From: Perna viridis
Taxonomy: Eukaryota
Length of the DNA stretch: 64,000 nt
Assembly: GCA_037379345.1 (NCBI GenBank)
Contig: CM074523.1
Coordinates: forward strand, 30,891,678 to 30,955,677
Direction: 5' to 3'
The notes beneath the pieces were generated by a model. The model saw only the letters and a program-made list of their open reading frames with translations. It was not told the DNA's origin and made no database searches. Shown here piece after piece: positions 1,401 to 64,000 of this stretch; position 1 is the stretch's first letter, and each line of letters opens with the position of its first letter. The position numbers were made by a program, and so were the translations under genes.

Positions 1401-2322
1401 TGTGTAAACTATAAAAATTAACAGAAATGAGACCAGAGAAAACTTTGCTATGGAACTAAGTGTTGTTGATTAGTTTCTATATAAATCATCATATATATAG
1501 TTTCTGAATACAGTTTTAATATACCGGTTACATGGGAGAAGCTTTGGACTGTCTACTTATATTCTGCCATTTAAGTTATTGAAGCATATTTTATCCAAAA
1601 AAAAAAAAAAAGAAATTTTCTACAAATTTTCTAATTTACCATGCCACAACATTGAAATCTTCTAAAGAAATTTTCTACTGATTTTTTTTTCACAAACCAA
1701 ACCATCCCCATTACAATAAACATGCATCCCATCCAAATGCCCAAAATACATAATACCAGTTTCTGCAACACTGTCTGGAATTCCCTATACCCAAATTCCA
1801 TAACATAGAGTAAACAATGTATTCAAATACCCAAAATACCACAATGTACCCCAAAACACCCAAAATATCCCAATACCAGCCAAGCAAGTATATAGCCCAT
1901 CTAAATACCCATATATACTAGTAAGCCAAGAATGTTAAAATTTTTGAAATATTCTTCTAGAGTGGGTGCAATGTAGATATTTTTTGTGGTAAAATTAGTG
2001 AGAAATTAAAGTTTCAAATTAAAACCGCCTAAATCTACCCATGACAACCCATGCTTTGCAAATTTTAGAGGTGGCGCACACCTACTCGCCCCCGCCCAAA
2101 TCCACCCCTTTACTAATGTAAAAGAATAGCCTTGAAAGCACCCACAAAACAAAAAAAAAAAAAAAACAAAAAAAGAATCCCTCTCCATGAAAAAAAACCA
2201 TTGAAATGGTATATATATATATATATCATTGACAATGGGCACATCTGAAATAGAAAAATAACCACTAGGTCTGAATGTGGTAGGTTTTGTTTTGTTTGTG
2301 TGCTTGTCCATTACATTTGTAC

Positions 2323-4041
2323 CTGTGTGATTTCAAATGATTCATCCAGACCCTTTCCAGGGATGTCAGCCCTATGGACCTCTCTCTCTGCTGGAATCTC
2401 AAAAGACTCCTCAACATCCTCATCTGGAATGGCAACCTGTTGGATGACCTTAGTAGCAGCAACATGCTCTGCTGTTGGTCCCTCTGGTTGGTCATCAACA
2501 GAGAAACTTGCATCCTGGGAGGAAGTGTATGAGTCTTCCTCAGGGACTGTCTCAAGATAGTCAATAGTGTGGGTGACAAAGCCAATATTTTCTGGTTGTT
2601 CCCTGTCTTCATAAACAATCATTTCATCATCGATATCTTCTGGACTGAGATCTTCCTGAAGAGCTGCCTCTCTCTGGAGAAGGTCACCTGATATCTGTTC
2701 TGCTTCTCCAAGCTGATATCCATCAACACCTTCACCTGGGACTGGTACATCTGGAATCCTGAATTCCAGGGCAACATCTTCTCTGTCTAGCAGTGGTTTG
2801 GCAGGTAAAGATTCCTTAAAGATAGCAATCTCATCAACATCTCTTCCACCTTGCTCTTCAAGGGAAGTAACTCCTACAACAGCCTCAAAGGTGACCCTCT
2901 GAGGCAGTTCATCATCAGGAACAATGAATGTCTCCTTTTCTGGCTTCAGATAGATTCCAGTCCCTTCTTTGTCGTCTTTGACATCTGGTTTGATTTCTAC
3001 ATGTCCTTCAACAACATCAGGTTTCTTGGCCTTAGGAAACTCATCATCAAAAATTTCCTCAGGTCCTTCTACATAAGTGGGCTTCTTTGGAGCTTGGTCT
3101 CCCTCCTCCAACCCACCTACATACTTATCTTCATCAAAATATGGTTTCTGTGGAAAGTTAATGTCTTCTTGAATGTCCTTTGATAATACCTCAGGTTGTT
3201 CCTCTTGAGGAAGGACAACTTCCTCCTCAAATACTTCAGCAGGGTATTTATCCTTTTCAACAACATCAGGAACAATCTCTGGTTTTTTCTTAGTCTTTAC
3301 AGTATCATCAGTAAGTGGAATGTCCTCAATTGTGATCTTTTCAGATGATTTTGATCGTGTTTCATCATCAGGAATTTGTTTCTTCCTGTCTTCTTTATGT
3401 TTAGGTACTACATCAGGCATCAGAATCTCAAATCCTTTGTCTTCAATTTCTTCTTCAGATGTAACTGAAGAAACAGAGATGTCCTCCTCAATTTCCTCCT
3501 CTGGTAATTCTTCACTGGAAATTGAGACATCATCATCCACCTTAGGTTTTACTCCCATGTCACCAGCTAGAGGTTGTTCTTCCTCAAACGAGCTGGTAGA
3601 ACCTCCTGAGTATGGCTTGGCTTCCTTGTCATCATCAGAGGCTGTCTTTGGCAGGTCAAGGGTTGGAATTTCATCTTTGGAAATAATAGTAAATTCTTCC
3701 CCAAGTGGTTTCTCTGGTACTTGTTCACCAGAGATTACAACATACTCCTCATGTTTTTCAGGAATTCTGTCCTCTGGGAATATCCTCTCAGCCTCCCTGG
3801 GTTGTATTGGTGCTTGATCCTCAATTGAAATATCAGCTGATATTGATCTATCCTCTTCAAATGATGCCTCATAATTTGCATCCTCAGGTAACGACCTAGC
3901 TGTTGACACCTCTTCCTCAGTGTCTGGGTGAATAATCACCTCCTCCTTCAAAAGAGTGTGGGAAACTTGATCAGGATTTGGTGAGGACATGAGAGTCCAG
4001 GTGAAGCTATGTGTTGGCGTGCGGTCAATAGGTGACTCAAG
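2323..4041 (-). CDS. Exon Y, 1719 nt, non-repetitive acidic PEVK-like spacer (LESPIDRTPTHSFTW...SFEITQ), phase 0-0
   Basis: ORF 2311..4134, long polypyrimidine tract then cacag|CTT, CAG|gtacaa donor (read-through would stop after VQM). Confidence 0.85.
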
Positions 4042-6525
4042 CTGTGTGAGGAAGCAGAACAAAAAAAAAAAATCTGGGTTAAAAACAAGCAGACATGCCC
4101 ACATGTAACTTCCTGTTTCAGATATTGATGACAAGGATATTTCTGATTCATAAAACTGTTACGTCACTGAAATGTTTATTAATAATTTTGATATTCTTTA
4201 CTGAGCAAAAAGTACAATGTATTAGTTATAATATATATATTGAGAAACTGCCAACAGACAGTTTTAGTAAGGCTCTTTCAAATTTCATTGTTTGTTTGTT
4301 GGGGTTTAACGTCCGAGCAGCAATATTTCAGCTATTTCAAATTTCAAGATCTGGATTAAGGCCATCTAAAATAATTCTTGGTTCTAAGGCCCTTCTGGTA
4401 TCTTTTGAGAAAGTCTCATCACCATATAAAAAAAAAATTAGGACCAAAAAGTTCCTTTTTATCATATTTTTTTTTTGGGTAGTGAAAAATGTTTCAAAAA
4501 ATACAAACATCACAATTTAGGACAATAAAACAGTGAAGAGAAATGCCTCCCTCCCCCATTGATTTTAGTGAAAAAATGGCCTGAGAACCATGAAATGAAC
4601 TTTGTATGGCCTTACAGGATTGAATTATTCCTATACTTGATCCATGCTTTTTCAAATCAATATCAAAACACGAAGTCACAAAATCATAAAAATCATGCTA
4701 AATGAAAAAAAACTTTGCAAAAGTGATGCCTCAACTTATCAATACATCCTCATACAGAAATACAAAAAAGCATATCCAATCACAGTTCTCTATAAGCAGA
4801 TCACAAAACATTACACTCACGAAGTCTTTCAAATTTTTAATTTCAATTTCAAGGTAAAATTTTTTTTAAAAGAGAGATAACTCTGTCATTGCTAAATATC
4901 TTAAAATCAATTGCCTCTCAATGTAAATTTAAAAAAAAATCAACAAAATAAAATCTACCAAACTTTAAAACAGTTTCCATATCCTAATGAATAGTAGACA
5001 TGAGTTATTACTCCCTTTGCAGAAGTAATATAATTTTAGATTTAGGTTCAGAATAAAAGAAAAAAATAGTGGGAGTGAACGTGGAAGAGAAAAAAATAGT
5101 GGGAGTGAACGTGGAAGAGAAACCATGAAATACAACAATGTTTCTTACAAAAAACAAAAAAAAAAATATCATAGTTTTTTCCATTTACTGCCTACATTCT
5201 AGTTAAAGGGAAATAACTCCGAGACAAACTGGTTCACTACCTCATTCAAGAAAAACAGAACAGTAAAAAACTTTTCTACGGAACTAAAATGGGTCAACTT
5301 TGGTAATTACTTGGTCATTTTTTAAGTATTTGTTTTATTCTTTAAGAAAATAGTTCTTCCTTATCTACATGAGGCAGCCAACTCCCCTGTAGTACATCTA
5401 GTATGAATTATTTCCCTTGGCATGAAATATGACCATAATTATTGAATCAATAGCTATCATATTAATTTGTCTTCTTCTGTATTTACTCCCACTTTTTCTT
5501 GAAAAGAAGAACACAATTTGTTCACAGTTTAATTTGGAGAAAAAATCCAAGAAAAATGAAAAAATCCTGATCTGTTTTTTGCAATCTTAATCCATTTTCA
5601 CAGCAATTTAAAAAAATATATATGTATGCTGAATGGTATCCAGTTTGCCATTAATTTATTCTGCATTGATAACTATGAACAACTGGCCTCAAAGATGGTA
5701 TACATTTATTTGAATAAGAATAAATATATGTGTGCACTGTAAATTACTTCTATGTGCCCATAATGTATATATCTACTTCTAATCATAATTATCAGGTAGG
5801 ATCAAGTTAATTCTGATTAAACATGTGATTTGCCAGAATACCTGAGATATCACAGAACTAAAGCTATTACTCTTAAAAGTCTTAAAAGCAGAATGATTAT
5901 TGACATCCAAACAGTGTTTGATTATTGCTTCAGTAATCCTGAAATGTTAGTTAACTGCAATAATCCCCTGGTCTAGACAGTGCATAACTGTATGAATTTA
6001 CAGTAATAATAGAAAACAGCAAAGAAAAGCCAACACCAAGACTGACAGAAAAGTTAAAGATCTTTAATGAAAAGATTCATGCAAAAAAAGTATAAATGTT
6101 TACAACGGAGAATTTTTGGCCAACTTTAATGATAAACTATTGCATTCAAAATGGACTTTTAATTTCCTTGCAAGAATGCATCTTTTTAGTACATTGTAAG
6201 AAGATTTGAAATAACAAAAAAAATCCAAAAACAGCATGAATCTTATTCATTAATATGGCTAAAGCAGAATTTTAGAAAATTGCTGCTGACACTCACAATT
6301 GTTCTTGTTTTTGTGCAAAATTGACACATTTAAATAAAAAAAAACATGCCCAAAAACAATATCTTTTAAATGGTGAATTACATTGAAATTGATAAAAACT
6401 TAAAATAGGAAAACTACTTCCTTGTTGAAAACAAATTCACTTGAAATTTCACTTCACTCAACTTTTTTTTATTGGATACATGGACATCATTAACGTTAAT
6501 GAAAATAATTTTAAAGTCCTTTTAC

Positions 6526-7655: not shown

Positions 7656-7683
7656 AGGTGTCATAGCAAACAAAAATACAAAC

Positions 7684-7987
7684 CATTAACAGTAAGTACA
7701 GCTGTAGTCGCAGCCTCGCCAGCCTCGTTAATGGCCTTGACAGTGTATATACCACTGTCTTCTGGGAAGGCTTCAGGGAGTACCAGAGTGCTCTCCCCTG
7801 GTTCATCACCTGGAATCACCTGATAGATATCATCAGTTTTGATTGGCTGGTCATTGACAAACCATTGGATTTCAGGTGCTGGTTGACCTTTAGCCTTGAC
7901 TGTGAACTTGGTGGATTCACCTTCCTGTACTTTGAGGTCACCAATGCCGATGACAAACTCTGGTGACACAATATCTTCTGGCTGCTT
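7684..7987 (-). CDS. Exon W, Ig domain 7 (SPEFVIGIGDLKVQEGESTKFTVKAKGQPAPEIQWFVNDQPI...FPEDSGIYTVKAINEAGEAATTAVLTVN), phase 0-1
   Basis: ORF 7661..7969, tttcag|AAG acceptor, G|gtttgt donor. Confidence 0.93.
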
Positions 7988-8397: not shown

Positions 8398-8485
8398 CTT
8401 TCGAAGAACATCTCTGTGGTCAACTTGTTCAGGTTCATAGACTGTTTCAGTCTTCTCAACATCAGTTGTGTCCTCAGCAAATTTC
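8398..8485 (-). CDS. Exon V2, 88 nt, variant motif 6 (KFAEDTTDVEKTETVYEPEQVDHRDVLRK), phase 2-0
   Basis: taacag|GAAATTTG acceptor identical to that of exon S, AAG|gtatga donor. Confidence 0.87.
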
Positions 8486-8868
8486 CTGTTAATAGGACAA
8501 GTAAACAGATAATGATTCTCATCTTCATCATCAATACTGCAATTATAATTTGTATCTGTCTCACTCTTATAAAGAATAATATTGAAATGCTTCAGAATGA
8601 GATACCATTTTTCATTTTACACTTTTCCTTTTTGGACTTCAAAAGTACATTTGACAACACGTCCTGTGAAGCTCCTTGTATTTATGAAAAGTAATTTTCT
8701 TGATGTCAAAAAATGGGTTTTTTTTTCAGTTCATTACAAAAAACAGTTCTTCACATTAAGCATTAAAAATTTATGACACATTTTACAAAATGTTAAAATA
8801 TTCAGACTAGCCAAACACATCTAAGTCTACTACATCCTTATGCCACATTAACCAAAGGTAAACATTAC

Positions 8869-8949
8869 CTGGATTTGAAAGTTGTTTTGTTTAGCACATT
8901 CCTAAAATCTAGCTGTTCAGATGTATAATACACACCGACTTTTGTTTTT
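8869..8949 (-). CDS. Exon V1, 81 nt, DFRxxL motif 5 (KTKVGVYYTSEQLDFRNVLNKTTFKSR), phase 2-2
   Basis: Weak gtgaag|A acceptor, AG|gtaatg donor. Same length, phase and KTKVG start as exon R. Confidence 0.85.
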
Positions 8950-9319
8950 CTTCACATGCAACAAAACACATAGAATGCAAAATTAGTACTGGGTTCAATC
9001 TAATTAAAATTATACTAATTATTCAATTCAGTCACTTCATCTAACAGCAATCTGTTCTACTTTCTGTTCAGATGACCATTTCAAAATCCTTTGGTTTCCC
9101 CATTACATAATGCTTCCACAATCATGAAAGCTGAAATCTGATTGGCTAATAAGAAAGGTCAACTCAACAGAAAATAGAGTGAAGTGATCCCACATGCAGT
9201 AAATGGAAAAATCAGTAGGTCTAATTTTAATTGAACAATACTTGGCTTTGTAGCACAAACATAAAAAATTCTTAATCTATAAAAATGAATTTTATGAATA
9301 TTCATGCCATGTGAAAGTA

Positions 9320-9787
9320 CACTGAAACCTCCTGTCTAAACTGAACCACATTGTTTCTTTAGGACAGGTGGCTGGTTTATGTAGAATCAAAATTTATAGA
9401 ATGTAATGGGACTTCAGAAGATGTTCAACTTAAACATGTTTATAGAATCTGATATGGAAGGATCATTCCTGTTAATCTTTGGAAAATATCATGTGGGAGA
9501 TTCTCCCCCACTGAAACTGTTTCATGTAGGAGATTCTCCCTCACTGACACTAACTAATATGGGAGATTCTCCCCCAGTGACTGTCTAATATGGGTGATTC
9601 TCCTCCACTGACAGTCCACTGTGGGGGATTCTCCCCCACTGACACTGTCTCATGAAGAATATTCTCCCCCATGGACACAGACTCATGTGGGAAATTCTCC
9701 CTGACTGACACTTTATCATGTGAGAGATTTTTTATATAAAGGAAATAGTTTTTTTTATTCAGGGCTTGGTGAGAACAGGTTTCACTG
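9320..9787. mobile_element. TA-type (Tc1/mariner/pogo-like) MITE carrying an internal minisatellite
   Basis: ta|cactgaaacct...aggtttcactg inverted ends; a related element lies at 18916..19074. Confidence 0.55.
9490..9730. repeat. Minisatellite, 31-33-bp unit x about 7, with palindromic core GGGAGATTCTCCC
   Basis: Unit starts at 9490, 9523, 9556, 9587, 9618, 9651, 9684, 9717. Confidence 0.9.
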
Positions 9788-10086
9788 TTTGCAAATTTGA
9801 ATTAATGGGAAAAGGTTCATTGCTTTTCATTGAAAACTCATGCAAAAAAAGAAAAAGTACAATTTGACAACAAAATTTCTAAACAAATGTTGTCCAAACA
9901 TTCTTCACACTTAATAATGACAAATTAAATAAATCAGAATTCATTGTTTAATTGCAGCATAAAAAATAGTTTACAATTTTTTCCCTCACATGCAACATTG
10001 AAAAGCCAACTTATTCATGCTGTAAACACTCCCTATCAAGTCTAATGACCATTGCAATTTATATTTCTGAGACATTCCATACTTAC

Positions 10087-10207
10087 ACTTCAGTTTTGAG
10101 AACACCCCTAAAGTCAAGTTGTTCAGCTTCCTGTGTGACGACCTCTACCTTTTCTATAACATCTGGTTTTGGAGCCTCTTCAATCTCTCCAGCATCCAAC
10201 TCATCAA
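10087..10207 (-). CDS. Exon U, 121 nt, DFRxxL motif 4 (VDELDAGEIEEAPKPDVIEKVEVVTQEAEQLDFRGVLKTEV), phase 1-2
   Basis: tattag|TT acceptor, GT|gtaagt donor (same junction as exon Q). Confidence 0.9.
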
Positions 10208-10390
10208 CTAATAAAAATAACAAACTTATCATTTAACATCTTAAAAATATAAAGTTAGCATTAATTCTTGTTGAATGCAAGTTTCATTTAAAGATAAGAA
10301 CCTGCTGACCTACAACATCTTGTGACCTGTAATGACCTTGTGAAAGTAAATCAAGTGACCTGTGAAACCCTGTAAAGTAAACCTCCTTAC

Positions 10391-10688
10391 CTGTGATGAC
10401 CTTGAGTACTGCTGAGCAGACAGCTTTTCCTGCCTCATTGACAGCTTGGACAGAATATTTCCCAGCATCCTCAGGGAATGTCTCTGATAACAGAAGAGTG
10501 CTCTCTCCTTGAACTCCAGGAATGACCTTGTAAATTTCATCATCTTCAATAGGCTGTTCGTCATGGAACCATGTGACCTCTGGTTGTGGTTTGCCCTTGA
10601 CCTTGGTGATAAATTTAGCCTCTTCTCCCTCCTGAACTTCAACACTCTTGATGGTCCTGATAAATTCAGGAGCTTCAGGGATCTCAGC
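10391..10688 (-). CDS. Exon T, Ig domain 6 (APEFIRTIKSVEVQEGEKAKFITKVKGKPQPEVTWFHDEQPI...FPEDAGKYSVQAVNEAGKAVCSAVLKVIT), phase 0-1
   Basis: tatcag|GCT acceptor, G|gtaagg donor. The ORF track shows only the wrong frame (10310..10645). Confidence 0.93.
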
Positions 10689-11116
10689 CTGATAAAAAAA
10701 ATAATTGAAAGATTCTTTATTTTACAATGTTGAATATATTAAAATGAATAGGCTGATTCATACACAAATAAAATCAGATATGGTTTGCCCAGTTGGAATG
10801 ATCTGAAACAAAAACTGAAAAATTTTCAGTTCAATATCTCAAAATATGGCCAATCAAAATTACTGAATTTGAGAAAGGAATGTGTGGATGATATTGTTCT
10901 ATGCTAATGCACTGTTAATGATATGACGAAGTTGAGCATTGGATGTTTCTGTGACTAATTGGTACCAAGGAATATCAAAAGGCAACCCCCTTCTCAAGTG
11001 GCAAGAAAGTAGTCTAAAAGGAAAAAATGTGACTGGAGGAAACACATTTATTGATTTCTTAGTGAAAATAACTTATTTGGAGAATGGTGTAAGTTACTGT
11101 TTTTCACAAAGCTCAC

Positions 11117-11201
11117 CTTTTTGAGGACTTCTCTGAAGTCTTTTTGTTCAGCTTCAGGTAAATCTTCAATTTCCTCTCCAGTAACATCTGACTCAAATTT
11201 C
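11117..11201 (-). CDS. Exon S, 85 nt, DFRxxL motif 3 (KFESDVTGEEIEDLPEAEQKDFREVLKK), phase 2-0
   Basis: taacag|G acceptor, AAG|gtgagc donor. Confidence 0.9.
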
Positions 11202-11245
11202 CTGTTAATATAAATCATTCAGTCATAATCATGTCTGTATCTTAA

Positions 11246-11423
11246 GAAGGTAGACCTAGGGTAAGGGACAAAACTCTTACAAATCATTTGAATGTTTGTA
11301 TTCATCATTTTACATCAATGTCATGTAAGCATCAAAGTAACTTGGACTGATTTCATTCATTTTCAAATGAAAGCTAGACAGGCTTTGTGAAATTGAATAT
11401 GATACAAACATATCACTGACTTT
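11246..11423. mobile_element. MITE family 1, truncated copy
   Basis: ttaa|gaaggtagacctagggtaagggaca, body to atatcactga, second TIR missing. Confidence 0.8.
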
Positions 11424-12069
11424 GGGCTCATGTTCTGTTGTACAATCATTATAGAGTTATTGTTCCATTTTACGGAGGTACACATTTTTGTCTGCTTCAA
11501 AACAAATATTTAACCCCCTTTCCCAAAATTATTTTTACACAATCCTTCTCCAAAACAAGTTTTTGAACCATACACATGCTTTAAATAGTAACATTTGAAT
11601 CCTCAAAGTTTAGTTCTTGCTCTAATGGACTATTTTACATGCCATACATGCATTCATGCCCAAACACTAGTATTTCAATGGCTTTGGTATCATTCAAATT
11701 TAATGGTAATACTGTTGGAATCAATGGATATTTTGGTTAAGTAGAAGGAACTGGATTAAAATGTATTCCTTAACTCTCAAGAAATGTGGCAATATATAAA
11801 GGGAAGTGTAGAGTGAAGGAAATGACCATACAAACATAAGGGGAGATAATTTAGGGTCATTTTCTACTGATGGGCAAGGAATCTCGGGAACTTTATTAAA
11901 AAGATGTGGCAGAAATTTCTATGTGATCTTCCAAGAAAGGGAGTCCATTATGTAGAAAAGTGTAGAAAGAATAATACACAAAAAGGTCAATTTATATACA
12001 AATTCATTTATCAAGGGAGGTACTAGTAACTTGTGACGACTTTTTTCAATTAAATTTTTTTCAACTTAC

Positions 12070-12150
12070 TTGGACTTGACAGTGGATTTCTGTAGTAAGC
12101 TACGGAAGTCTTTCTGCTCAGCTTTAAATTTCATTCCAACTTTTGTTTTC
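12070..12150 (-). CDS. Exon R, 81 nt, DFRxxL motif 2 (KTKVGMKFKAEQKDFRSLLQKSTVKSK), phase 2-2
   Basis: gtatag|G acceptor, AA|gtaagt donor. Confidence 0.88.
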
Positions 12151-13065
12151 CTATACATCACACAATACAAACATCATGCTAATTAGCCATGCAAAATAAT
12201 ATTATCCCCCTTTTCAATGCACATTTCTTGTATTCATTAGTACTACAAATTACATTAAATGCAGAATGTAATTAAATACAACCAACTAAATTTTCCACAA
12301 CTTGCATTCCCTAAAAAATAGAAAATGGTGAAAATGTCCCAATATAACAAAAGTTTACCCTTTGGAAATATATGGAAAAAGATTAGTAACTCACTGTCAA
12401 TACTCTATCGAAACTATTCGGCCATTTCTGCTACACTAAAAATAAACTCGGATGCAGAAAGGAGTATATCTTTTTGAAAAAAATGCCTGAATTGTAGTCA
12501 TACATGACTCAAAGTAGTTCTATCCACCAGGTGGCATTAAAAAAATTGGTTAATATCACTAGAAATAAAGAACAATAACTCTGTCAAGAATTTTGGCACA
12601 AAGCAAGGAGCTAGGAAAAAAAGAAGTAAAAATTTCAACCAGTAAGACTATAATTTTAAAACCAAATCGATCAAATTCTGGACAAATTCTTTTGCCTCCA
12701 AGGTTTTTCTTTAGTGTAACTAGAAAGGCTTAGGAGTTCCAATTGTGTCAATACTATGTTCTATAATGGCACTTAATACTCAATAAACTATAATACAATT
12801 TTTTCTTTGCATTGATGTTAATATTAACTATTACATGCATCTTTAATGTTTTAATTTGAAAAAAAAATCACAACAGATTTTGAAAACATGACACAATTTC
12901 TACTGCTACTAGAGTCACAATGTTATAAACTAAACAAAATAATACTATTTTTTATCATTCTAACAATATACACCGGTCATTTCTGATCATTACATCCTAA
13001 AAACTTATTTTCTCTTGTAATTTGATCATGCAATGAAAATTAATACTCCAATAAAGAGGCATCAA

Positions 13066-13337
13066 GTATCAGTCTCTGTAAGAATCAGGCAGTAGGTGAA
13101 ACATGAAAAAAAACCCATCATTTTGATAGTGTAATTAGACTATTTGCATCATCAGAATCAAGGAAACCAAACAAGATATTCCATATAATGCTGCAGCATT
13201 GAGTTAGAAAATCATACCACACAAAATAATAATAGAGAAAGTAACCTTCAGTGATATTACATTGTCATATCAGTGGGGTTTTGACAAACATGTTTCTGAT
13301 TTTTCCCATTTGGCCTGATTCTTACAAACACTTACAC
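13066..13337. mobile_element. MITE family 3 (TTAA-flanked, TIR core GTAAGAATCAGGC), internally shortened copy
   Basis: Homologous to 57484..57827; ends gcctgattcttacaaacacttacac|ttaa. Confidence 0.82.
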
Positions 13338-13546
13338 TTAATGATTCCCAAAAAAATATATAAATAAAATATTCAAATAGTTAAAAATTATAAAAAAAAA
13401 ACAACCTTTAACAGGCATTTTCTTTACAAAATGTTCTTAATTGGATGTGACCTCTTTAATTCTAAGACTTTAAGTGGAGCTATTACAGAAAATTGTCAAA
13501 CTTAAAAAAAACATCTTGAAATTTTCTCAAGTCCCAAAGTACTTAC

Positions 13547-13598
13547 ACTTGGGTTTGGAGTTGGTCCCTGAAGTCAGTTTGTTCTGGGCCTGATGGTC
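13547..13598 (-). CDS. Exon Q, 52 nt, DFRxxL motif 1 (RPSGPEQTDFRDQLQTQV), phase 1-2
   Basis: ttatag|GA acceptor, GT|gtaagt donor, phases match exons P and R. Confidence 0.88.
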
Positions 13599-14069: not shown

Positions 14070-14262
14070 TTTTCACCAGGAGAGAGACAGAGACAGTTGA
14101 TTCTCCGTGATCATTCTGAGCTATGACTTTGTAGGTTCCTGCATCTTCAGCTAGGACATCCTGGATGGTGATTGTTGTGTGGAAAAGGTGGTCATCTTGA
14201 ATTGTGTCAATCTGTGTTTTCTTGTCACTAGAAAGTGGCATGTCATTCTTGGTCCAGTGTAC
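14070..14262 (-). CDS. Exon P, C-half of Ig domain 5 (VHWTKNDMPLSSDKKTQIDTIQDDHLFHTTITIQDVLAEDAGTYKVIAQNDHGESTVSVSLLVK), phase 0-1
   Basis: ccatag|GTA acceptor, A|gtaagt donor. Confidence 0.92.
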
Positions 14263-15521: not shown

Positions 15522-15642
15522 TTAATAGTTGAATGTCCTTATTCTGCTAAAGATATTTTGAGACCCAATTATCAAATGGCATTTTAATGGCCTAAATTCT
15601 GTTTGATTTCACTATCAACAATATAACAAACATCTCACATAC

Positions 15643-15945
15643 CGAGCACAACAAGTTCACAGGTTGTCATGGCAGTACCAACATCATTTTTAGCAACAAC
15701 CTTGTACTGTCCAGCATCTTCGGGATACACATCAGCAATGAACAGCGAGCATTCATCACCTTCATATGTGAGCTTGAATTCTTCTGACGGGAATATCATT
15801 TCCTCACCCTTGTACCATGTGACTGTTGGCCTTGGCAACCCAGTGACCTTGCAAACTAAGGTTGTCTGGCCTCCATCTTGTGCAGAAACATCTTGTAAGT
15901 ATTGGACAACTTCGGGAGCTTTGGTTATCTCTTTTTCTTCAACAG
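15643..15945 (-). CDS. Exon N, Ig domain 4 (APEVVQYLQDVSAQDGGQTTLVCKVTGLPRPTVTWYKGEE...YPEDAGQYKVVAKNDVGTAMTTCELVVL), phase 1-1
   Basis: ORF 15635..16003, cacag|CT acceptor, G|gtatgt donor, 303 nt. Confidence 0.94.
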
Positions 15946-16276
15946 CTGTGAAGGAAACATAAGCATACAGTTTCTCATACAAGACAACATTTTTGGCAAG
16001 CACATAAAAACATTTTAAAGGTTTTATTTCAAATAAAGAAATGTACTATATTCTTAAAATATTTTACGCAGCAAAATGTTTATGCTGTGCTGTATACTTT
16101 CTTAAACAAATTCTTAATTCTAAAGAATTCATATTAATTATTCAGATCCATAATTTTGTAACAAATAAATTGAAAGGAAGGTTAACATTATATCAATAAA
16201 ATCATTAAAATCCAGAGCATTTTGGAGTAATCAAACATCATGTCAACAGACTGACAGACAATGTTATACTTTGTAC

Positions 16277-19770: not shown

Positions 19771-19873
19771 TTCAACGGACAAGTATATAAAAGAAGTTTG
19801 GTATACACAGGTTTCGTTGCCTATTAAAAGACCTCTAACCAACAGCCAAGTCCTATGCTGAGAAATTTACTAC

Positions 19874-22800
19874 CTTTCAATGACTCCTGTTTTACTTCAT
19901 GAAGAGTGGACACTTCAGAAGGAGCTATTTCAATGTCAGAAATTTCTGATTGTAAACTTTCCATTTTTGCCATATCTGAAGAAACTGACTTGTCTTGCTC
20001 TTCTTCTGGTACAACATTATCCAGTTTTTCAGAAATTACTGAAATTTCAGAAATCGCTTTCTCTGGAATGATTTCTGGAATGAAACTTTTCTTGGCTTCT
20101 ACAGTGTCTGTTTTTTCTTCTTCTATCTTTATAACAGTTTCTACCTCCTCCTCAGTAACTGAGGGTTTCTCACTTGGTTTTTCTATTTCAGAAATGACTG
20201 GCGTTTCTTCAGATACCATTTCTGAGGCTACTACTTCTTCTGGTCCAACTGAGATTTCTACTTCAGTTGGTTTTTCTGTCTTGGTCTCAATGACAATCTG
20301 AGACACTTCAGTTTTCTCCTTGTCAACAGAGAATTCAGTAATTTCAGGTTTTTCTTCTTTCACTTCCTTTGAAATTTCTGTTTTTTCGGCTTCTGTTGAA
20401 ATTCCAGTCTTGGTTGGTTTTTCAGTCTTGGTTTCAATGATAACCTTTGAAATTGTTGTTTTCTCTTTGTCCACTGAGATTTCAGTTATTTCAGGTTTTT
20501 CTTCCTGCATATCCTCAGGAATTGTAATGTCTTCAGCAGTTATTGAGATTTCAGAAACTTCCTTCTCTGGAATGATTTCTGGAATGAAACCTTTCTCAAC
20601 TTTTACAGTGTCTGGTTTTTCTTCTATTTTTACAACAGTTTCTACCTCCTCCTCAGTAACTGAGGGTTTCTCGATTGGTTTTTCTATTTCAGAAATGATT
20701 GGCGTTTCTTCAAAAATCGTTTCTGAGGCTACTACTTCTTCTGGTCCAACTGAGATTTCTACTTCAGTTGGTTTTTCAGTCTTGGTCTCAATGACAACCT
20801 GAGATACTTCAGTTTTCTCCTTGTCAACAGAGATTTCAGTAATTTCAGGTTTTTCTTCCTGCATATCCTCAGGAATTGTAATGTCTTCAGCAGTTACTGA
20901 GATTTCAGAAACTTCCTTCTCTGGAATGATTTCTGGAATGAAACCTTTCTCAGCTTCTACAGTGTCTGGTTTTTCTTCTTCTATTTTTACAACAGTTTCT
21001 ACCTCCTCCTCAGTAACTGAGGGTTTCTCGCTTGGTTTTTCTATTTCAGAAATGACTGGCATTTCTTCAGATACCGTTTCTGAGGCTACTACTTCTTCTG
21101 GTCCAACTGAGATTTCTACTTCAGTGGGTTTTTCTGTCTTGGTCTCAATGACAATCTGAGATACTTCAGTTTTCTCCTTGTCAACAGAGATTTCAGTAAT
21201 TTCAGGTTTTTCTTCTTTCACCTCCTCGGAAATTTCTGTTTCTTCAGCTTCTAATGAAATTTCAGTCTCGGTTGGCTTTTCAGTCTTGGTTTCAATGACA
21301 ACCTTTGAAATTGTTGTTTTCTCTTTGTCCACTGAGATTTCAGTTATTTCAGGTTTTTCTTCCTGCATATCCTCAGGAATTGTAATGTCTTCAGCAGTTA
21401 CTGTGATTTCAGAAACTTCCTTCTCTGGAATGATTTCTGGAATGAAACCTTTCTCAGCTTCTACAGTGTCTGGTTTTTCTTCTTCTATTTTAACAACAGT
21501 TTCTACCTCCTCCTCAGTAACTGAGGGTTTCTCACTTGGTTTTTCTATTTCAGAAATGACTGGCGTTTCTTCAGAAACCGTTTCTGAGGCTACTACTTCT
21601 GGTCCAACTGAGATTTCTACTTCAGTTGGTTTTTCTGTCTTGGTCTCAATGACAATCTGAGATACTTCAGTTTTCTCCTTGTCAACAGAGATTTCAGTAA
21701 TTTCAGGTTTTTCTTCTTTCACTTCCTTTGAAATTTCTGTTTCTTCAGCTTCTAATGAAATTTCAGTCTCAGTTGGCTTTTCAGTCTTGGTTTCAATGAC
21801 AACCTTTGAAATTGTTGTTTTCTCTTTGTCCACTGGGATTTCAGTTATTTCAGGTTTTTCTTCCTGCATATCCTCAGGAATTGTAATGTCTTCAGCAGTT
21901 ACTGAGATTTCAGAAACTTCCTTCTCTGGAATGATTTCTGGAATGAAACCTTTCTCAGCTTCTACAGTGTCTGGTTTTTCTTCTATTTTTACAACAGTTT
22001 CTACCTCCTCCTCCTCAGTAAATGAGGGTTTCTCGATTGCTTTTTCTATTTCAGAAATGACTGGCATTTCTTCAGAAACCGTTTCTGAGGCTACTACTTC
22101 TTCTAGTCCAACTGAGATTTCTTCTTCAGTTGGTTTTTCTGTCTTGGTCTCAATTACAATCTGAGATACTTCAGTTTTCTCCTTGTCAACAGAGATTTCA
22201 GTAATTTCAGGTTTTTCTTCCTGCATATCCTCAGGAATTGTAATGTCTTCAGCAGTTATTGAGATTTCAGAAACTTCCTTCTCTGGAATGATTTCTGGAA
22301 TGAAACCTTTCTCAGCTTCTACAGTGTCTGGTTTTTCTTCTTCTATTTTAACAACAGTTTCTACCTCCTCCTCAGTAACTAAAGGTTTCTCGATTGGTTT
22401 TTCTATTTCAGAAATGATTGGCATTTCTTCAGAAACCATTTCTGAGGCTACTACTTCTTCTAGTCCAACTGAGATTTCTTCTTCAGTTGGTTTTTCTGTC
22501 TTGGTCTCAATGACAATCTGAGATACTTCAGTTTTCTCCTGGTCAACAGAGATTTCAGTAATTTCAGGTTTTTCTTCCTGCATATCCTCAGGAATTGTAA
22601 TGTCTTCAGCAGTTATTGAGATTTCAGAAACTTCCTTCTCTGGAATGATTTCTGGAATGAAACCTTTCTCAGCTTCTACAGTGTCTGGTTTTTCTTCTTC
22701 TATTTTAACAACAGTTTCTACCTCCTCCTCAGTAACTGAGGGTTTCTCACTTGGTTTTTCTATTTCAGAAATGATTGGCGTTTCTTCAGAAACCGTTTCT

Positions 22801-25800
22801 GAGGCTACTACTTCTTCTGGTCCAACTGAGATTTCTACTTCAGTTGGTTTTTCTGTCTTGGTCTCAATGACAATCTGAGATACTTCAGTTTTCTCCTTGT
22901 CAACAGAGATTTCAGTAATTTCAGGTTTTTCTTCTCTCACTTCCTCTGAAATTTCTGTTCTTTCAATATCTGTTGAAATTTCAGTGTCCGTTGGTTTTTC
23001 AGTCTTGGTTTCAATGACAACCTTTGAAATTGTTGTTTTCTCTTTGTCCACTGAGATTTCAGTAATTTCAGGTTTTTCTTCCTGCATATCCTCAGGAATT
23101 GTAATGTCTTCAGCAGTTACTGAGATTTCAGAAACTTCCTTCTCTGGAATGATTTCTGGAATGAAACCTTTCTCAGCTTCTACAGTGTCTGGTTTTTCTT
23201 CTTCTATTTTTACAACAGTTTCCACCTCCTCCTCCTCAGTAAATGAGGGTTTCTCGATTGCTTTTTCTATTTCAGAAACGACTGGCGTTTCTTCAGAAAC
23301 CGTTTCTGAGACTACTACTTCTTCTGGTCCAACTGAGATTTCTACTTCAGTTGGTTTTTCTGTCTTGGTCTCAATGACAATCTGAGATACTTCAGTTTTC
23401 TCCTTGTCAACAGAGATTTCAGTAATTTCAGGTTTTTCTTCTTTCACTTCCTTTGAAATTTCTGTTTCTTTAGCTTCTGTTGAAATTTCAGTCTTGGTTT
23501 CAATGACAACCTTTGAAATTGTTGTTTTCTCTTTGTCCACTGAGATTTCAGTTATTTCAGGTTTCTCTTCCTGCATATCCTCAGGAATTGTAATGTCTTC
23601 AGCAGTTACTGAGATTTCAGAAACTTCCTTCTCTGGGATGATTTCTGGAATGAAACCTTTCTCAGCTTCTACAGTGTCTGGTTTTTCTTCTTCTATTTTT
23701 ACAACAGTTTCTACCTCCTCCTCAGTAACTAAAGGTTTCTCGATTGGTTTTTCTATTTCAGAAATGATTGGCATTTCTTCAGAAACCATTTCTGAGGCTA
23801 CTACTTCTTCTAGTCCAACTGAGATTTCTTCTTCAGTTGGTTTTTCTGTCTTGGTCTCAATGACATTCTGAGATACTTCAGTTTTCTCCTGGTCAACAGA
23901 GATTTCAGTAATTTCAGGTTTTTCTTCCTGCATATCCTCAGGAATTGTAATGTCTTCAGCAGTTATTGAGATTTCAGAAACTTCCTTCTCTGGGATGATT
24001 TCTGGAATGAAACCTTTCTCAGCTTCTACAGTGTCTGGTTTTTCTTCTTCTATTTTTACAACAGTTTCTACCTCCTCCTCAGTAACTAAAGGTTTCTCGA
24101 TTGGTTTTTCTATTTCAGAAATGATTGGCATTTCTTCAGAAACCATTTCTGAGGCTACTACTTCTTCTAGTCCAACTGAGATTTCTTCTTCAGTTGGTTT
24201 TTCTGTCTTGGTCTCAATGACAATCTGAGATACTTCAGTTTTCTCCTGGTCAACAGAGATTTCAGTAATTTCAGGTTTTTCTTCCTGCATATCCTCAGGA
24301 ATTGTAATGTCTTCAGCAGTTATTGAGATTTCAGAAACTTCCTTCTCTGGAATGATTTCTGGAATGAAACCTTTCTCAGCTTCTACAGTGTCTGGTTTTT
24401 CTTCTTCTATTTTTACAACAGTTTCTACCTCCTCCTCAGTAACTGAGGGTTTCTCGCTTGGTTTTTCTATTTCAGAAATGACTGGCGTTTCTTCAGATAC
24501 CGTTTCTGAGGCTACTACTTCTTCTGGTCCAACTGAGATTTCTACTTCAGTGGGTTTTTCTGTCTTGGTCTCAATGACAATCTGAGATACTTCAGTTTTC
24601 TCCTTGTCAACAGAGATTTCAGTAATTTCAGGTTTTTCTTCCTGCATATCCTCAGGAATTGTAATGTCTTCAGCAGTTATTGAGATTTCAGAAACTTCCT
24701 TCTCTGGGATGATTTCTGGAATGAAACCTTTCTCAGCTTCTACAGTGTCTGGTTTTTCTTCTTCTATTTTTACAACAGTTTCTACCTCCTCCTCAGTAAC
24801 TAAAGGTTTCTCGATTGGTTTTTCTATTTCAGAAATGATTGGCATTTCTTCAGAAACCATTTCTGAGGCTACTACTTCTTCTAGTCCAACTGAGATTTCT
24901 TCTTCAGTTGGTTTTTCTGTCTTGGTCTCAATGACAATCTGAGATACTTCAGTTTTCTCCTGGTCAACAGAGATTTCAGTAATTTCAGGTTTTTCTTCCT
25001 GCATATCCTCAGGAATTGTAATGTCTTCAGCAGTTATTGAGATTTCAGAAACTTCCTTCTCTGGAATGATTTCTGGAATGAAACCTTTCTCAGCTTCTAC
25101 AGTGTCTGGTTTTTCTTCTTCTATTTTTACAACAGTTTCTACCTCCTCCTCAGTAACTGAGGGTTTCTCGCTTGGTTTTTCTATTTCAGAAATGATTGGC
25201 GTTTCTTCAGATACCGTTTCTGAGGCTACTACTTCTTCTGGTCCAACTGAGATTTCTACTTCAGTGGGTTTCTCTGTCTTGGTCTCAATGACAATCTGAG
25301 ATACTTCAGTTTTCTCCTTGTCAACAGAGATTTCAGTAATTTCAGGTTTTTCTTCTCTCACTTCCTCTGAAATTTCTGTTCTTTCAATATCTGTTGAAAT
25401 TTCAGTGTCCGTTGGTTTTTCAGTCTTGGTTTCAATGACAACCTTTGAAATTGTTGTTTTCTCTTTGTCCACTGAGATTTCAGTAATTTCAGGTTTTTCT
25501 TCCTGCATATCCTCAGGAATTGTAATGTCCTCAGCAGTTACTGAGATTTCAGAAACTTCCTTCTCTGGAATGATTTCTGGAATGAAACCTTTCTCAGCTT
25601 CTACAGTGTCTGGATTTTCTTCTTCTATTTTTACAACAGTTTCCACCTCCTCCTCAGTAACTAAAGGTTTCTCGATTGGTTTTTCTATTTCAGAAATGAT
25701 TGGCATTTCTTCAGAAACCATTTCTGAGGCTACTACTTCTTCTAGTCCAACTGAAATTTCTTCTTCAGTTGGTTTTTCTGTCTTGGTCTCAATGACAATC

Positions 25801-27796
25801 TGAGATACTTCAGTTTTCTCCTGGTCAACAGAGATTTCAGTAATTTCAGGTTTTTCTTCCTGCATATCCTCAGGAATTGTAATGTCTTCAGCAGTTATTG
25901 AGATTTCAGAAACTTCCTTCTCTGGAATGATTTCTGGAATGAAACCTTTCTCAGCTTCTACAGTGTCTGGTTTTTCTTCTTCTATTTTTACAACAGTTTC
26001 TACCTCCTCCTCAGTAACTGAGGGTTTCTCGCTTGGTTTTTCTATTTCAGAAATGATTGGCGTTTCTTCAGAAACCGTTTCTGAGGCTACTACTTCTTCT
26101 GGTCCAACTGAGATTTCAACTTCAGTTGGTTTTTCTGTCTTGGTCTCAATGACAATCTGAGATACTTCAGTTTTCTCCTTGTCAACAGAGATTTCAGTAA
26201 TTTCAGGTTTTTCTTCTCTCACTTCCTCTGAAATTTCTGTTCTTTCAATATCTGTTGAAATTTCAGTGTCCGTTGGTTTTTCAGTCTTGGTTTCAATGAC
26301 AACCTTTGAAATTGTTGTTTTCTCTTTGTCCACTGAGATTTCAGTAATTTCAGGTTTTTCTTCCTGCATATCCTCAGGAATTGTAATGTCCTCAGCAGTT
26401 ACTGAGATTTCAGAAACTTCCTTCTCTGGAATGATTTCTGGAATGAAACCTTTCTCAGCTTCTACAGTGTCTGGATTTTCTTCTTCTATTTTTACAACAG
26501 TTTCTACCTCCTCCTCAGTAACTGAGGGTTTCTCGCTTGGTTTTTCTATTTCAGAAACGACTGGCATTTCTTCAGAAACCGTTTCTGAGGCTACTACTTC
26601 TTCTGGTCCAACTGATATTTCTACTTCAGTTGGTTTTTCTGTCTTGGTCTCAATGACAATCTGAGATACTTCAGTTTTCTCCTTGTCAACAGAGATTTCA
26701 GTAATTTCAGGTTTTTCTTCCTGCATATCCTCAGGAATTGTAATGTCTTCAGCAGTTACTGAGATTTCAGAAACTTCCTTCTCTGGAATGATTTCTGGAA
26801 TGAAACCTTTCTCAGCTTCTACAGTGTCTGGTTTTTCTTCTTCTATTTTTACAACAGTTTCCACCTCCTCCTCAGTAACTGAGGGTTTCTCACTTGGTTT
26901 TTCTATTTCAGAAATGACTGGCGTTTCTTCAGATACCGTTTCTGAGGCTACTACTTCTTCTGGTCCAACTGAGATTTCTACTTCAGTTGGTTTTTCTGTC
27001 TTGGTCTCAATGACAATCTGAGATACTTCAGTTTTCTCCTTGTCAACAGAGATTTCAGTAATTTCAGGTTTTTCTTCTTTCACTTCCTTTGAAATTTCTG
27101 TTTCTTCAGCTTCTGTTGAAATTTCAGTCTCGGTTGGTTTTTCAGTCTTGGTTTCAATGACAACCTTTGAAATTGTTGTTTTCTCTTTGTCCACTGGGAT
27201 TTCAGTTATTTCAGGTTTTTCTTCCTGCATATCCTCAGGAATTGTAATGTCTTCAGCAGTTACTGAGATTTCAGAAACTTCCTTCTCTGGAATGATTTCT
27301 GGAATGAAACCTTTCTCAGCTTCTACAGTGTCTGGTTTTTCTTCTTCTATTTTTACAACAGTTTCTACCTCCTCCTCAGTAAATGAGGGTTTCTCGCTTG
27401 GTTTTTCTATTTCAGAAATGACTGGCATTTCTTCAGAAACCGTTTCTGAGGCTACTACTTCTTCTGGTCCAACTGAGATTTCTACTTCAGTTGGTTTTTC
27501 TGTCTTGGTCTCAATGACAATCTGAGATACTTCAGTTTTCTCCTTGTCGACAGAGATTTCAGTAATTTCAGGTTTTTCTTCTTTTACTTTCTCTGAGATA
27601 TCTATTTTGATCTCTTTTATAGATACTTCACCTGTGTCTATTGGCAAAACCTTAGTTTGTTTTGTTCTGAGATTAGTCATCACCTCAGATATGGCATTAT
27701 CAATAATTGTCTCAATAAAGTTTGAAACCGAAGAAGATATCTGACTTTGAATAATCTCCTCATGTGGGTAAACTTCCTTCTCAATAGTTGTGACAT
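19874..27796 (-). CDS. Giant exon K, 7,923 nt (2641 codons): 18 x 119-aa units interspersed with 8 x about 49-aa units; phase 1-1
   Basis: ORF 19824..27863, cactcag|AT acceptor, G|gtagta donor, length divisible by 3. Confidence 0.88.
20030..27590 (-). repeat. Coding composite array: 357-bp units with optional 147-bp inserts (periods 357 or about 504 bp)
   Basis: Antisense stop positions spaced 501,357,501,504,357,357,507,486,357,357,357,357,504,357,504,357,504. Confidence 0.95.
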
Positions 27797-29539
27797 CTGA
27801 GTGAGAATACATATAAATATTATGTTGATCAAAAATAACCCATCTAAAGGGTTGTGACATCAAGGTAAAAGGTACAGGTAATTATATTTTTATTTTTGAA
27901 TTTCTGATCATCAAAATGAGATTGGTTTTCTTGCTCGAGTGAGAAAAGAGATCAAATGACAACCATTATTGCACAGTTTTGCAGATGAAGACAACAGACA
28001 TTTCCTTTGCCAATTTACTGTGCTTACAAAAGAAATACAACCTGAAAAAATTCAGTGTGACTGTCACATTGATGAATGAAGTAAGCTGCACAGATGTGGA
28101 AAGGATATCATACCTCATTATATATGGAACTATCCAAAGTTCGATTACAGATGATACAAGTCAAAACAAATATTAATAATAATAATAATAATAAAAATAA
28201 AAAAAAACAATCAAAGGCTGGAAAATTTATCTACATTTGATCATTTGTTGGTTCTATTTATTGTAAGGTATGATATCTGTCTTCACATGTTGTAATCACT
28301 TCACACTGATAGATTCAAAGAAAACTTAATAGAAATATCATAAAATAAAGAAGTAACTCCTGTTGGATGTTATAAAATGGCCACTTTTCTAAATATGATA
28401 AAAATGGGATACTCCCAATTCTAAATTTTTTTTTTATTAAAGTCTTGTTGAAACCTGCGGGCATGTGCATTATCTAATGGATAAAGTGAAGATTTGAAGG
28501 CTGATCTCCAGGAAAGAGATACACTACAGCTTGAAGGATTTTGCCATATCTTACTTGACAAATTAAGTACAAGTCTGTGTAACAAGCAGGCATAATGTTG
28601 AAAAAATAAACAAAAAACAAGAGAGCAACTGACTCAATATTGCATTTACACTCAGATATCTCCAGTATTAATATTTACCTATCTTAATGGTAGGAAATAT
28701 TTTATTTTTTTATTTGAATGTTAGAAAAAAGTTAACAAAGTAGGCTGCCCCTGAAATGTTCTTTGAAGTGCATTCCAATGGTTATCAAAAATATTAGAAA
28801 AAGTCTGTTTTATCTTTTAGTTCTCATAGAACAGGAAGTTAACTACTTTTTGTTCTGGCTATACGTCAATCACTGCCAAATTCTCACACAGACTGGCACT
28901 TTAGGAATCCTACAACCATTCAAAAGTTTTGGATATGGTATACCTCAATATAACTATCCACAAGCAAGTGAATAATTCATCCCACTATGGCGAACTAAAA
29001 TGACAATATCCACTTGTATTGCAGTGTATTTCAATCTATGCAATTGGAATTTTATACTACAAACTAAGGAAGATAATCTAAGGAAGAAAATCTAAAATGC
29101 TGTGCTACAAAATTAACTACCCTTAAGAAACTTTTACATGATTATGATGGATTGTACAATGAATAGTAAGAAACAACAAGACAAATTGGGTAATGGGGGA
29201 CTCACTACAACATAACTTATTGGGTTTGGAAGGAAAAATTAAATAATCATTCGCCATAGCCTCACAACTAAGAAAGTACGGGAGATAACTGTTTCTCATT
29301 CTTCCAAACAAGACTAACAAGGTAGGGGAGAGAACTCATTATTAATTCTCCCATTCTCCCCAACAGGACCAATAAGGTAGGGGAAAGGACTCATATATCA
29401 TTCCCAACACAACATGACTCAGAAGGTAGGGGAGAGAACTTAAATGCATAAGGAAAAGTCTGCATATAGATGATTTAAGGTTTAAAAGTAAACTGCCCAT
29501 TTGGGTTAGATTTATTATGGATTTGAGGAAAAAACATAC

Positions 29540-30481: not shown

Positions 30482-31634
30482 TTAAACTTTCTATCATTTC
30501 ATAGGTATTTTAGCCCAAGTTTGGTAGAAAGTAAAACTCTGTCAATTGTCTAGTTAACTACCATCAGTTAAAATTCATCAGGTGATTGTCCTTTAATCAT
30601 GGGAATACCAACTCAACTCTATTCCCTGAAATTAACCATTTTACTAGCTGTAACACAATATGAAATAAATTGATTGACATTACACATATTCTCAAACATA
30701 AGTTATTTCCAAAGCTTTAGGATGATTTGAACCTAGAAAAAGGAAAAGCTCAGAATCTGTATAGACTGTGTATGCCTGTGACCAAAGGAGATGAGCTCTA
30801 ATCATTACAGCATATATAACAATGATGTTCAGGAGATAGAATTTGTTAAATGACATTCATCTGGTAAAAATCTTTAAGTATTTAACTGGAAGGACAATTA
30901 AGCAGACACAAATTTATATACTCAATGAATAAATCAACAAATATATTGTCAATTAACTAAGGCAGTTTATCAGGTGATCATTTAATCAATTAAAAACAAA
31001 TAGTAACCCTCTGAATGTTATCATTATATTTGCTGTAGTACAACTACGCCAGCAAAAGATGAGCTCTTCATTCACAAAGGTAAATTTATTTTCTTAAGAC
31101 ACCAAACTACCCACTTCAGACAACCGTATGTTTATAAACATATGAAGATACAAATTCATTTCTCATTCAACTATTTATAAATTAACATAATGGCATTCAA
31201 AAGGGGAAACAAGAACAAAATTATGTATTGATTTGATTAATTAACTTTTAACATTAGGCACAAAATTTATTAAAAAAGATTTAGAAAAAAAAACCTACAA
31301 GATTTTAAGGAATACAAATTCAGAAAATTTTAATGAACTACTATTTTTTTTAAGATATACAAAATTCAAAAATGCAATAAACACTTACAAAACTGGTAGC
31401 TGGATTAGGGTGAGAGGGTTCCTTTAATCTGTTCAGGCAACGTAACAACTTCAATTATCATTTCATGCAGTTTTGTATAAAGGAAAAGGCAAAACAAAAC
31501 ATGCCATTACAAGTCCTTAATTAATTTAACAGAAAATGTATTACATTTTTAAGCAGTTATTTCATTTTTCACATGCTGCCTGCAAGGAACAACAATGCCT
31601 AATATTTTATGAAATGGAAGCCACAGGCATGTAC

Positions 31635-57827: not shown

Positions 57828-57948
57828 TTAATCTACCTTATATAGATTACTTAAATCAAGGAAAAGTGTATTGCAGAGTTTACTAAAATAAAATGACAAC
57901 CCCTCCAACAATTTTAACCCTAACATTTCCTACTAAAAATTTACTTAC

Positions 57949-63900: not shown

Positions 63901-64000
63901 TTTCTGCTGGTTGTTGTACTGTTTCTTCTGCAATCTGTGTAGCAATGGAGTCATCAGTCATGACAGATTCCATTATTTCTTTAGTATATTCTTCAGCATA
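57949..64000 (-). CDS. Giant exon A (5' end outside window): about 38 x 45-aa E/T/V/P/K repeats followed by Ig I-set domain 1
   Basis: ORF 57941..63973 is open to the window edge. It ends SPKIIKEISGIEIPEGKELVITVGFISQPESTVTWFVDEQPL...PEDEGEYKAVIENEAGKATSTCFVQVI. Donor C|gtaagt, phase 1. Confidence 0.92.
58480..63700 (-). repeat. Coding tandem array, 135-bp (45-aa) unit, about 38 copies
   Basis: Unit ...EQPTEKTEVEISVKPEVEEQKPAEVPTEETPITVEETVEITTEVS... Confidence 0.95.

Follow-up and report, generated by a model that had tools for sequence, protein, structure and literature searches.

Putative MLCK-like actin-anchoring motif triads in two tandem-duplicated units of a titin-like gene of Perna viridis

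How titin-like proteins of invertebrates attach to thin filaments, and whether the interaction of titin with actin tunes muscle stiffness, are open questions. They are raised by a stretch of 64,000 nucleotides (nt) of the Perna viridis genome (C13:30891678-30955677; 'the window' below means this whole stretch), the minus strand of which carries short exons with DFRxxL motifs resembling the motifs through which myosin light chain kinase (MLCK, encoded by MYLK) binds actin. To what kind of protein do these exons belong, and could they hold it on filamentous actin (F-actin)? We consider it likely that they form two tandem-duplicated units of a titin-like muscle protein, in which triads of motifs are putative MLCK-like F-actin anchors. 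Both classes, of motif and of protein, are already known. Here a motif for which MLCK supplies a stoichiometry and a mutational test (DFR to AAA) is present in a titin-like protein, where it can be tested on short recombinant fragments.

Motif exons and their transcripts

A six-frame regular-expression scan found EQxD[FH]RxxL exactly six times in the window, always on the minus strand and in the exons and sequences that the first-pass annotation had listed. The motifs read, in order, EQTDFRDQL, EQKDFRSLL, EQKDFREVL, EQLDFRGVL, EQLDFRNVL and EQVDHRDVL, with D codons starting at window positions 13575, 12110, 11140, 10115, 8909 and 8421, and the motif-bearing span is 8404-13575. The core is D-x-R-x-x-L, in the form DFRxxL in five of the six copies and DHRxxL in motif 6. 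The pattern occurs nowhere else on the minus strand, either in the rest of the window or in the 120 kb downstream, and 400 shuffles of the window produced none. Nineteen plus-strand matches to 'DFRNFL' come from reading a tandem repeat in antisense and are without meaning.

The exons make up two units, each composed of three small motif exons, with one motif per exon, and one I-set Ig exon. They are listed in order of transcription, with window coordinates and Pfam expectation values (E); X1, X2 and X4 are sequencing runs, one from each of three studies.

14070..14241, minus strand: C-terminal half of an I-set Ig directly upstream of E1 (Pfam partial, E 4.7e-8)
13547..13598, minus strand: exon E1, 52 nt, phase 1-2, motif 1 EQTDFRDQL; joint 12149/13546 in X1, X2 and X4
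12070..12150, minus strand: exon E2, 81 nt, phase 2-2, motif 2 EQKDFRSLL; tentative in-frame cassette; flanking joints both seen
11117..11201, minus strand: exon E3, 85 nt, phase 2-0, motif 3 EQKDFREVL; joints in contigs
10391..10688, minus strand: exon E4, 298 nt, phase 0-1, I-set Ig (Pfam E 1.6e-23); flanking joints both seen
10087..10207, minus strand: exon E5, 121 nt, phase 1-2, acidic linker and motif 4 EQLDFRGVL; best match of a MYLK-derived profile (E 2.6e-6)
8869..8949, minus strand: exon E6, 81 nt, phase 2-2, motif 5 EQLDFRNVL; tentative in-frame cassette
8398..8485, minus strand: exon E7, 88 nt, phase 2-0, motif 6 EQVDHRDVL (a DXRXXL variant)
7684..7987, minus strand: exon E8, 304 nt, phase 0-1, I-set Ig (Pfam E 1.7e-23); contig pieces over 7684-7987; joint 7987/8398

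The exons were searched and aligned singly, and spacings and phases were obtained by nucleotide arithmetic. All the exons are bounded by AG at the acceptor and GT at the donor, and the phases chain as 1-2, 2-2, 2-0 and 0-1, twice over. Successive motifs lie 23 and 34 amino acids (aa) apart in the first triad and 23 and 35 aa apart in the second, and motif 3 is 138 aa from motif 4. The phases, the spacings and the Ig domain after each triad are all as first annotated. The preceding Ig exon stops at 14070 with a GT donor, in phase 1, which is compatible with E1. By Pfam, the motif arrays are non-domain linkers with I-set domains on either side.

We used assembled contigs to assess whether these exons are spliced as predicted. 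No run was recorded as RNA and RNA status was guessed; of the words that make up the stretch, 21-30% are present in fourteen runs, which is about the exon share. Contigs of X1, X2 and X4 were aligned on window 7650-13640. All seven junctions, for which the first-pass annotation had proposed a search of muscle reads, are present in the contigs of these three studies as CT..AC joints (GT..AG on the minus strand). Because spliced joints are present, the contigs are processed transcripts, and one X2 contig of 5,121 nt extends from E5 upstream past the 7650-13640 stretch. A further run, X8, contained intron-like pieces only, with no joints, and was excluded from use. Thus, the motif exons are spliced as predicted and expressed.

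The transcripts also bear on the middle exon of each triad. E2 and E6 are both 81 nt long with phase 2-2, so that skipping either preserves the frame. A joint that skips E6 (8484/10086) was found in X1 only, in one contig with a side of 29 nt, and a joint that skips E2 (11200/13546) in X4 only, in one contig with a side of 27 nt. Contigs and unitigs break exactly at the E5 donor, and a protein model of the gastropod Elysia marginata passes directly from an E5-like to an E7-like segment; both are compatible with skipping. Because each joint is one contig in one run, we regard the middle exons as cassettes only tentatively.

Several introns are repetitive. Summed contig depth reaches thousands in the E2-E3 (11250-11449) and E1-E2 (13050-13449) introns in all four runs, compared with tens on the exons, and many loose contig ends fall at 11387 and 11419; these stretches are high-copy repeats, probably fragments of transposons. 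The E5-E6 intron contains repeated units at window 9500-9720 with the core GGGGAGAATC(T/C)CCCA.

Relation to MLCK and to gastropod proteins

In MLCK, a DFRXXL triad confers high-affinity F-actin binding at one MLCK per three actins, mutation of the motifs reduces binding to actin-containing filaments, and the fragment MLCK-147 forms actin rafts (PMC2196421). Long MLCK carries five DXRXXL motifs 28-29 aa apart that suffice to target it to stress fibres; as few as two may do, and DVRXXL is accepted as a motif (PMC2185581). C. elegans MLCK-1 is described in one paper as being without DFRXXL motifs.

We searched 1.84 billion representative proteins with the E4 Ig exon (phmmer) and applied a regular expression for the motif to the 150 Ig-rich proteins returned, a set in which rank tracked the number of Ig domains and not orthology and which contained no self-hit. 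Motif arrays occur in ten of the 150, deuterostome MYLKs and mollusc proteins among them. The deuterostome carriers are Varanus MYLK, a lamprey protein, and the 'MYLK smooth muscle-like' proteins of Patiria and Antedon; a Pecten 'MYLK-like' protein has one motif. A profile made only from 14 motif instances in the MYLKs of Varanus, Lampetra, Patiria and Antedon was then run against 9,396 open reading frame (ORF) pieces from the window and the 120 kb downstream (184 kb in all). The six exons were the top six pieces (E 2.6e-6 to 8.5e-3), and the seventh had E 0.79. Flanking residues common to the window motifs and MYLK are E (-5 and -3), Q (-2), V (+9), T (+11) and K/R (+12). The first-pass annotation had claimed a likeness to MYLK beyond the core on the strength of a quoted MYLK sequence; that likeness holds, and the quoted string is close to Varanus P0073, which has AEQMNFRPTLQQVKPK at the equivalent motif. 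The first motif directly follows an Ig domain in both the deuterostome MYLK and the mollusc groups, and the array also lies in a linker between I-set domains in the Varanus, Patiria and Antedon MYLKs. By profile and flanks, the window motifs are of the MLCK type beyond the core.

Alignment with molluscan orthologues had been suggested as a further check, and orthologous arrays are present in four gastropod proteins:

P0174/P0057, Aplysia californica 'titin, partial': orthologous array, four motifs
P0175, Elysia chlorotica: orthologous array, four motifs
GFS00815.1 (P0132), Elysia marginata 'titin-like': orthologous array
XP_009049556.1 (P0130), Lottia gigantea: orthologous array, three motifs

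The gastropod layout is an Ig domain, DFRDQL directly after it, two or three more EQxDFRxxL motifs, and then an Ig domain 43-56% identical to E4. In Aplysia and E. chlorotica the motifs between the two Ig domains are DFRDQL, DFRGVL/DFREVL, DFRHLL/DFRHML and DFRAVL. In Aplysia, Elysia and Lottia, the Ig that precedes the array is the one to which the Ig before E1 aligns, and the Ig after the Aplysia titin array is identical to E4 at 54 of 96 positions and to E8 at 50 of 97. Across 17 mollusc copies of the motif, D, R and L are invariant, and F is present in all but window motif 6, which has H. The gastropod proteins have automatic names ('titin-like' or 'hypothetical'), and no source name mentions the motifs.

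A single array of three or four motifs is present in these gastropod proteins, against six motifs and two Ig domains in the window. By local alignment, E2 and E6 share a counterpart segment in the gastropods, E3 and E7 likewise, and E4 and E8 share a counterpart Ig, so the Perna lineage has duplicated the unit of motif exons and Ig. The copies are paralogues, identical at 15 of 26 positions for E2 and E6 and at 53 of 92 for E4 and E8; the latter figure indicates that the duplication is not recent.

A word-indexed search with the motif region of Aplysia P0057 returned three proteins and one with that of Lottia P0130 returned only itself, and blanks in either are uninformative because of the length window and short words. 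A profile of the six exons found only these six across the genome, an insensitive search that missed the motif of the genome's own MYLK gene. One protein without a source name (P0022; UPI000228F5A2, 3,173 aa) repeats five times, 340-780 aa apart, an Ig with EExVDFRKQLK immediately behind it, so that a lone DFRxxL motif behind an Ig is also found within a larger repeat of another giant protein.

The host gene and its paralogues

Upstream of the motif exons, 8,595 aa are encoded in three uninterrupted acidic repeat ORFs with repeats of 135-357 nt, in agreement with the acidic spring of more than 8,000 aa first annotated. Acidic residues make up 30-33% of these ORFs and basic ones 8-11%, and the residues E, T, V, I, K and P abound. 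The other features of the gene in the window, again in order of transcription, are as follows (bounds are those of the ORFs).

57941..63973, minus strand: 2,010-aa open frame built of 135-nt tandem repeats, with an Ig at its end; E/T/V/P-rich
45033..45869, minus strand: acidic linker and I-set Ig (Pfam E 7.3e-23)
31549..43269, minus strand: 3,906-aa open frame built of tandem repeats of 147 nt and 327 nt; 33% acidic
19824..27863, minus strand: 2,679-aa open frame built of 357-nt tandem repeats; E/I/V/T/K/P-rich, a PEVK-like acidic spring
15635..16003, minus strand: I-set Ig exon (Pfam E 7.2e-25)
2311..4134, minus strand: open frame of 607 aa downstream of E8, 26% acidic, no Pfam domain

The 607-aa frame may well be another, unique linker exon belonging to this gene. 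At window 16284-16594 there are eight tandem copies of a 39-nt repeat.

We extended the analysis over the 184 kb of minus strand with home-made Ig and Fn3 profiles, applied to ORF pieces of at least 40 aa. About 65 Ig and 53 Fn3 domains were found, and Pfam confirmed ten spot checks of them. Downstream of the window there follow about 35 more Ig domains, Fn3/Ig triplets, a run of about 43 Fn3 domains, a kinase at C13:30.799-30.801 Mb and 13 Ig domains. The Fn3 array and titin-type kinase for which the first-pass annotation had suggested looking downstream are thus present on the same strand; the kinase lies 92 kb beyond the window and is preceded by about 53 Fn3 domains. Its N-lobe exon scores best against the twitchin and titin kinases, with MYLK4 lower, and its C-lobe exon matches DAPK, twitchin and MYLK4 about equally. 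In the long Fn3 run (loci L006-L010, C13:30803950-30850753, minus strand; about 43 Fn3 exons) no Ig was detected between the Fn3 exons, although the 40-aa cut-off may miss Igs split over two exons. Titin and twitchin, unlike this run, have mixed Fn3/Ig super-repeats.

A PEVK-like spring, I-set arrays, an Fn3 region, a kinase of the titin/twitchin branch and C-terminal Ig domains are therefore collinear on one strand, and we assign the gene, from its predicted domain order, to the giant titin-like muscle proteins. This class comprises vertebrate titin and, among invertebrates, Sallimus/kettin, TTN-1 and I-connectin.

The genome also contains better candidates for the MYLK and twitchin genes. 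The MYLK-like gene is 5.7 Mb from the window gene:

C13:25.08-25.17 Mb (25080001-25170000, loci L014-L022): MYLK-like gene

Its kinase exon is 67% identical to a Pecten MYLK-like protein, and the two C13 kinases are 44% identical to each other. The matching Pecten protein shows the MYLK layout: Ig domains, then a single Fn3, the kinase and an Ig at the end. The gene has motifs of its own, TEDFRDIL, PHFRNVL and EQLDFRHVL, all in one exon of 1,049 aa (25118615-25121761, plus strand), in contrast to the titin-like gene, which has one motif per exon. EQLDFRHVLKRHV stands just before an Ig, and this last motif followed by an Ig is as in echinoderm MYLK. This gene is the true MYLK orthologue. On another chromosome, a kinase exon at C8:2853258-2853467 (L023) scores 128 bits against the Aplysia twitchin kinase 1KOB, to which it is nearly identical, compared with 69.8 bits for the kinase exon of the window gene, and the C8:2,853,258 locus is the twitchin orthologue. 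On C6 (22858357-22920325, minus strand) there is a large tandem array of kinase gene copies, with about 25 almost identical open frames for protein kinases (Pkinase, about 178 bits each), each about 248 aa long and about 2 kb from the next.

Could the window gene nevertheless be one of these two? The first-pass annotation had seen a giant elastic protein, which stands, and had thought it perhaps a MYLK or stretchin-MLCK orthologue, which does not. Such an orthologue would explain the motif array common to both and the downstream kinase of the MLCK/titin branch. However, the gene at 25.08-25.17 Mb has its own motifs, is a far better match to Pecten 'myosin light chain kinase, smooth muscle-like' (its kinase exon is 67% identical to it, the two C13 kinases 44% identical to each other), and combines the closest kinase with a best Pecten match of MYLK layout, whereas the window gene has about 53 Fn3 domains and a kinase closer to twitchin and titin than to MYLK4. 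We therefore reject MYLK orthology as very improbable. That the exons belong to a twitchin (UNC-22) gene is even less probable: the best solved relative of the downstream kinase is indeed Aplysia twitchin kinase, but the C8 exon matches it at nearly twice the bit score. In summary, the genome has three paralogous giant kinase genes, of which the window contains the titin-like one, a paralogue of MYLK and twitchin and an orthologue of neither.

A putative anchor and its known counterparts

If the triads work as in MLCK, each motif would bind one actin subunit and each triad would be a multivalent F-actin anchor. On one side of the arrays is the acidic PEVK-like spring of about 8,600 aa, on the other the long Ig/Fn3/kinase part, which is presumably on the thick filament. 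Actin binding at this point would fasten the spring's end to the thin filament and alter the free length of the spring, which could shorten or stiffen it; the arrays could also tether thin to thick filaments, and two clamps might cross-link actin filaments, as the first-pass annotation had proposed. Skipping of the 81-nt middle exon would leave two motifs about 30-31 aa apart, with a lower expected avidity. By analogy with MLCK, the elastic titin-like protein would thus probably clamp thin filaments.

Several observations weigh against this proposal. Actin binding by the window motifs is carried over from MLCK. The spacing of 23 plus 34 or 35 aa is irregular compared with the 28-29 aa period of MLCK, motif 6 has H in place of F, and the linkers around the window motifs are acidic, whereas the MLCK flanks are more basic. 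The connection of the motif exons to the kinase rests on same-strand collinearity, the transcript contigs covering 7650-13640, and each skipping joint is a single contig in a single run with a side below 30 nt. The Igs beside the window arrays showed no specific best match to the Igs beside the MYLK array; the case for homology is therefore confined to some 20 residues per motif, and the likeness could also have arisen by convergence on a common binding site. A complex prediction with two actin chains of Babylonia areolata (P0288) and a two-motif Aplysia fragment scored 0.07 against a mark of 0.34 and weighs neither way.

The array could instead be a conserved motif of the titin/MLCK family with another partner or role here (regulatory, calmodulin-sensitive, or binding myosin or paramyosin), its likeness to MLCK reflecting ancestry only. 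The spacing unlike that of MLCK and the acidic linkers would fit, as would P0022, in which a single motif per large repeat makes multivalent actin binding less obvious. However, the conservation of D, R and L in 17 of 17 mollusc copies and of F in 16 of 17 argues against another role, as does the lowered binding of motif-mutated MLCK to actin-containing filaments (PMC2196421), and we consider this explanation unlikely. Chance matches or unexpressed pseudo-exons are hardly credible given the absence of motifs from 400 shuffles, the spliced contigs from three studies and the conservation in four gastropod proteins. Putative MLCK-like anchoring to F-actin remains the reading we favour; we know of no DFRxxL motif with an established partner other than actin.

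The motif, which here lies between the spring and the Ig/Fn3/kinase part, is conserved in at least four gastropod species and in this genome, and connects MLCK's actin-binding region with the titin family at large. The presence of the motif in both the true MYLK and the titin-like gene of one genome points to an old shared module. A bolder proposal, which we put forward as a rather doubtful possibility, is that mollusc titin uses splicing-tuned DFRxxL clamps between its spring and its thick-filament part, and that MLCK inherited its actin-binding region from an ancestral titin-like protein. Were it true, the clamp would be a switch of titin-based stiffness, or a thin-to-thick tether akin to catch, and the actin-binding region would not be an invention of MLCK. 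Among the open-access papers naming DFRXXL or DXRXXL, we found none on invertebrate titin.

Three known systems invite comparison. Mytilus twitchin reportedly has a single DFRXXL near a phosphorylation site and links thick and thin filaments, a statement that we did not find in the open-access literature. It is likewise a giant mollusc protein with a kinase and, reportedly, the motif, but it is the product of another gene (the orthologue on C8), with, as reported, a single motif in place of two triads. The window gene shares with proteins of the titin class its PEVK-like springs, tandem Ig arrays, Fn3-rich part and a near-C-terminal kinase followed by Ig domains, and differs in a strongly acidic spring (30-33% D+E). 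To our knowledge, actin binding in the titin class has been ascribed to PEVK, N2A or kettin Ig-linker modules and not to DFRxxL arrays. The closest counterpart of the arrays is that of MYLK, which has the same core motif and flanks, in tandem, in the linker that separates I-set Igs, and a kinase of the same branch follows; the spacing within a triad is uneven here, yet its three motifs span 57-58 aa, the length of two MLCK periods. The host here is a titin-like giant, with the MYLK orthologue elsewhere in the genome, and its motifs lie one per exon, the middle exon possibly a cassette. Where short MLCK has three motifs and long MLCK five, the window gene has two triads split by an Ig domain.

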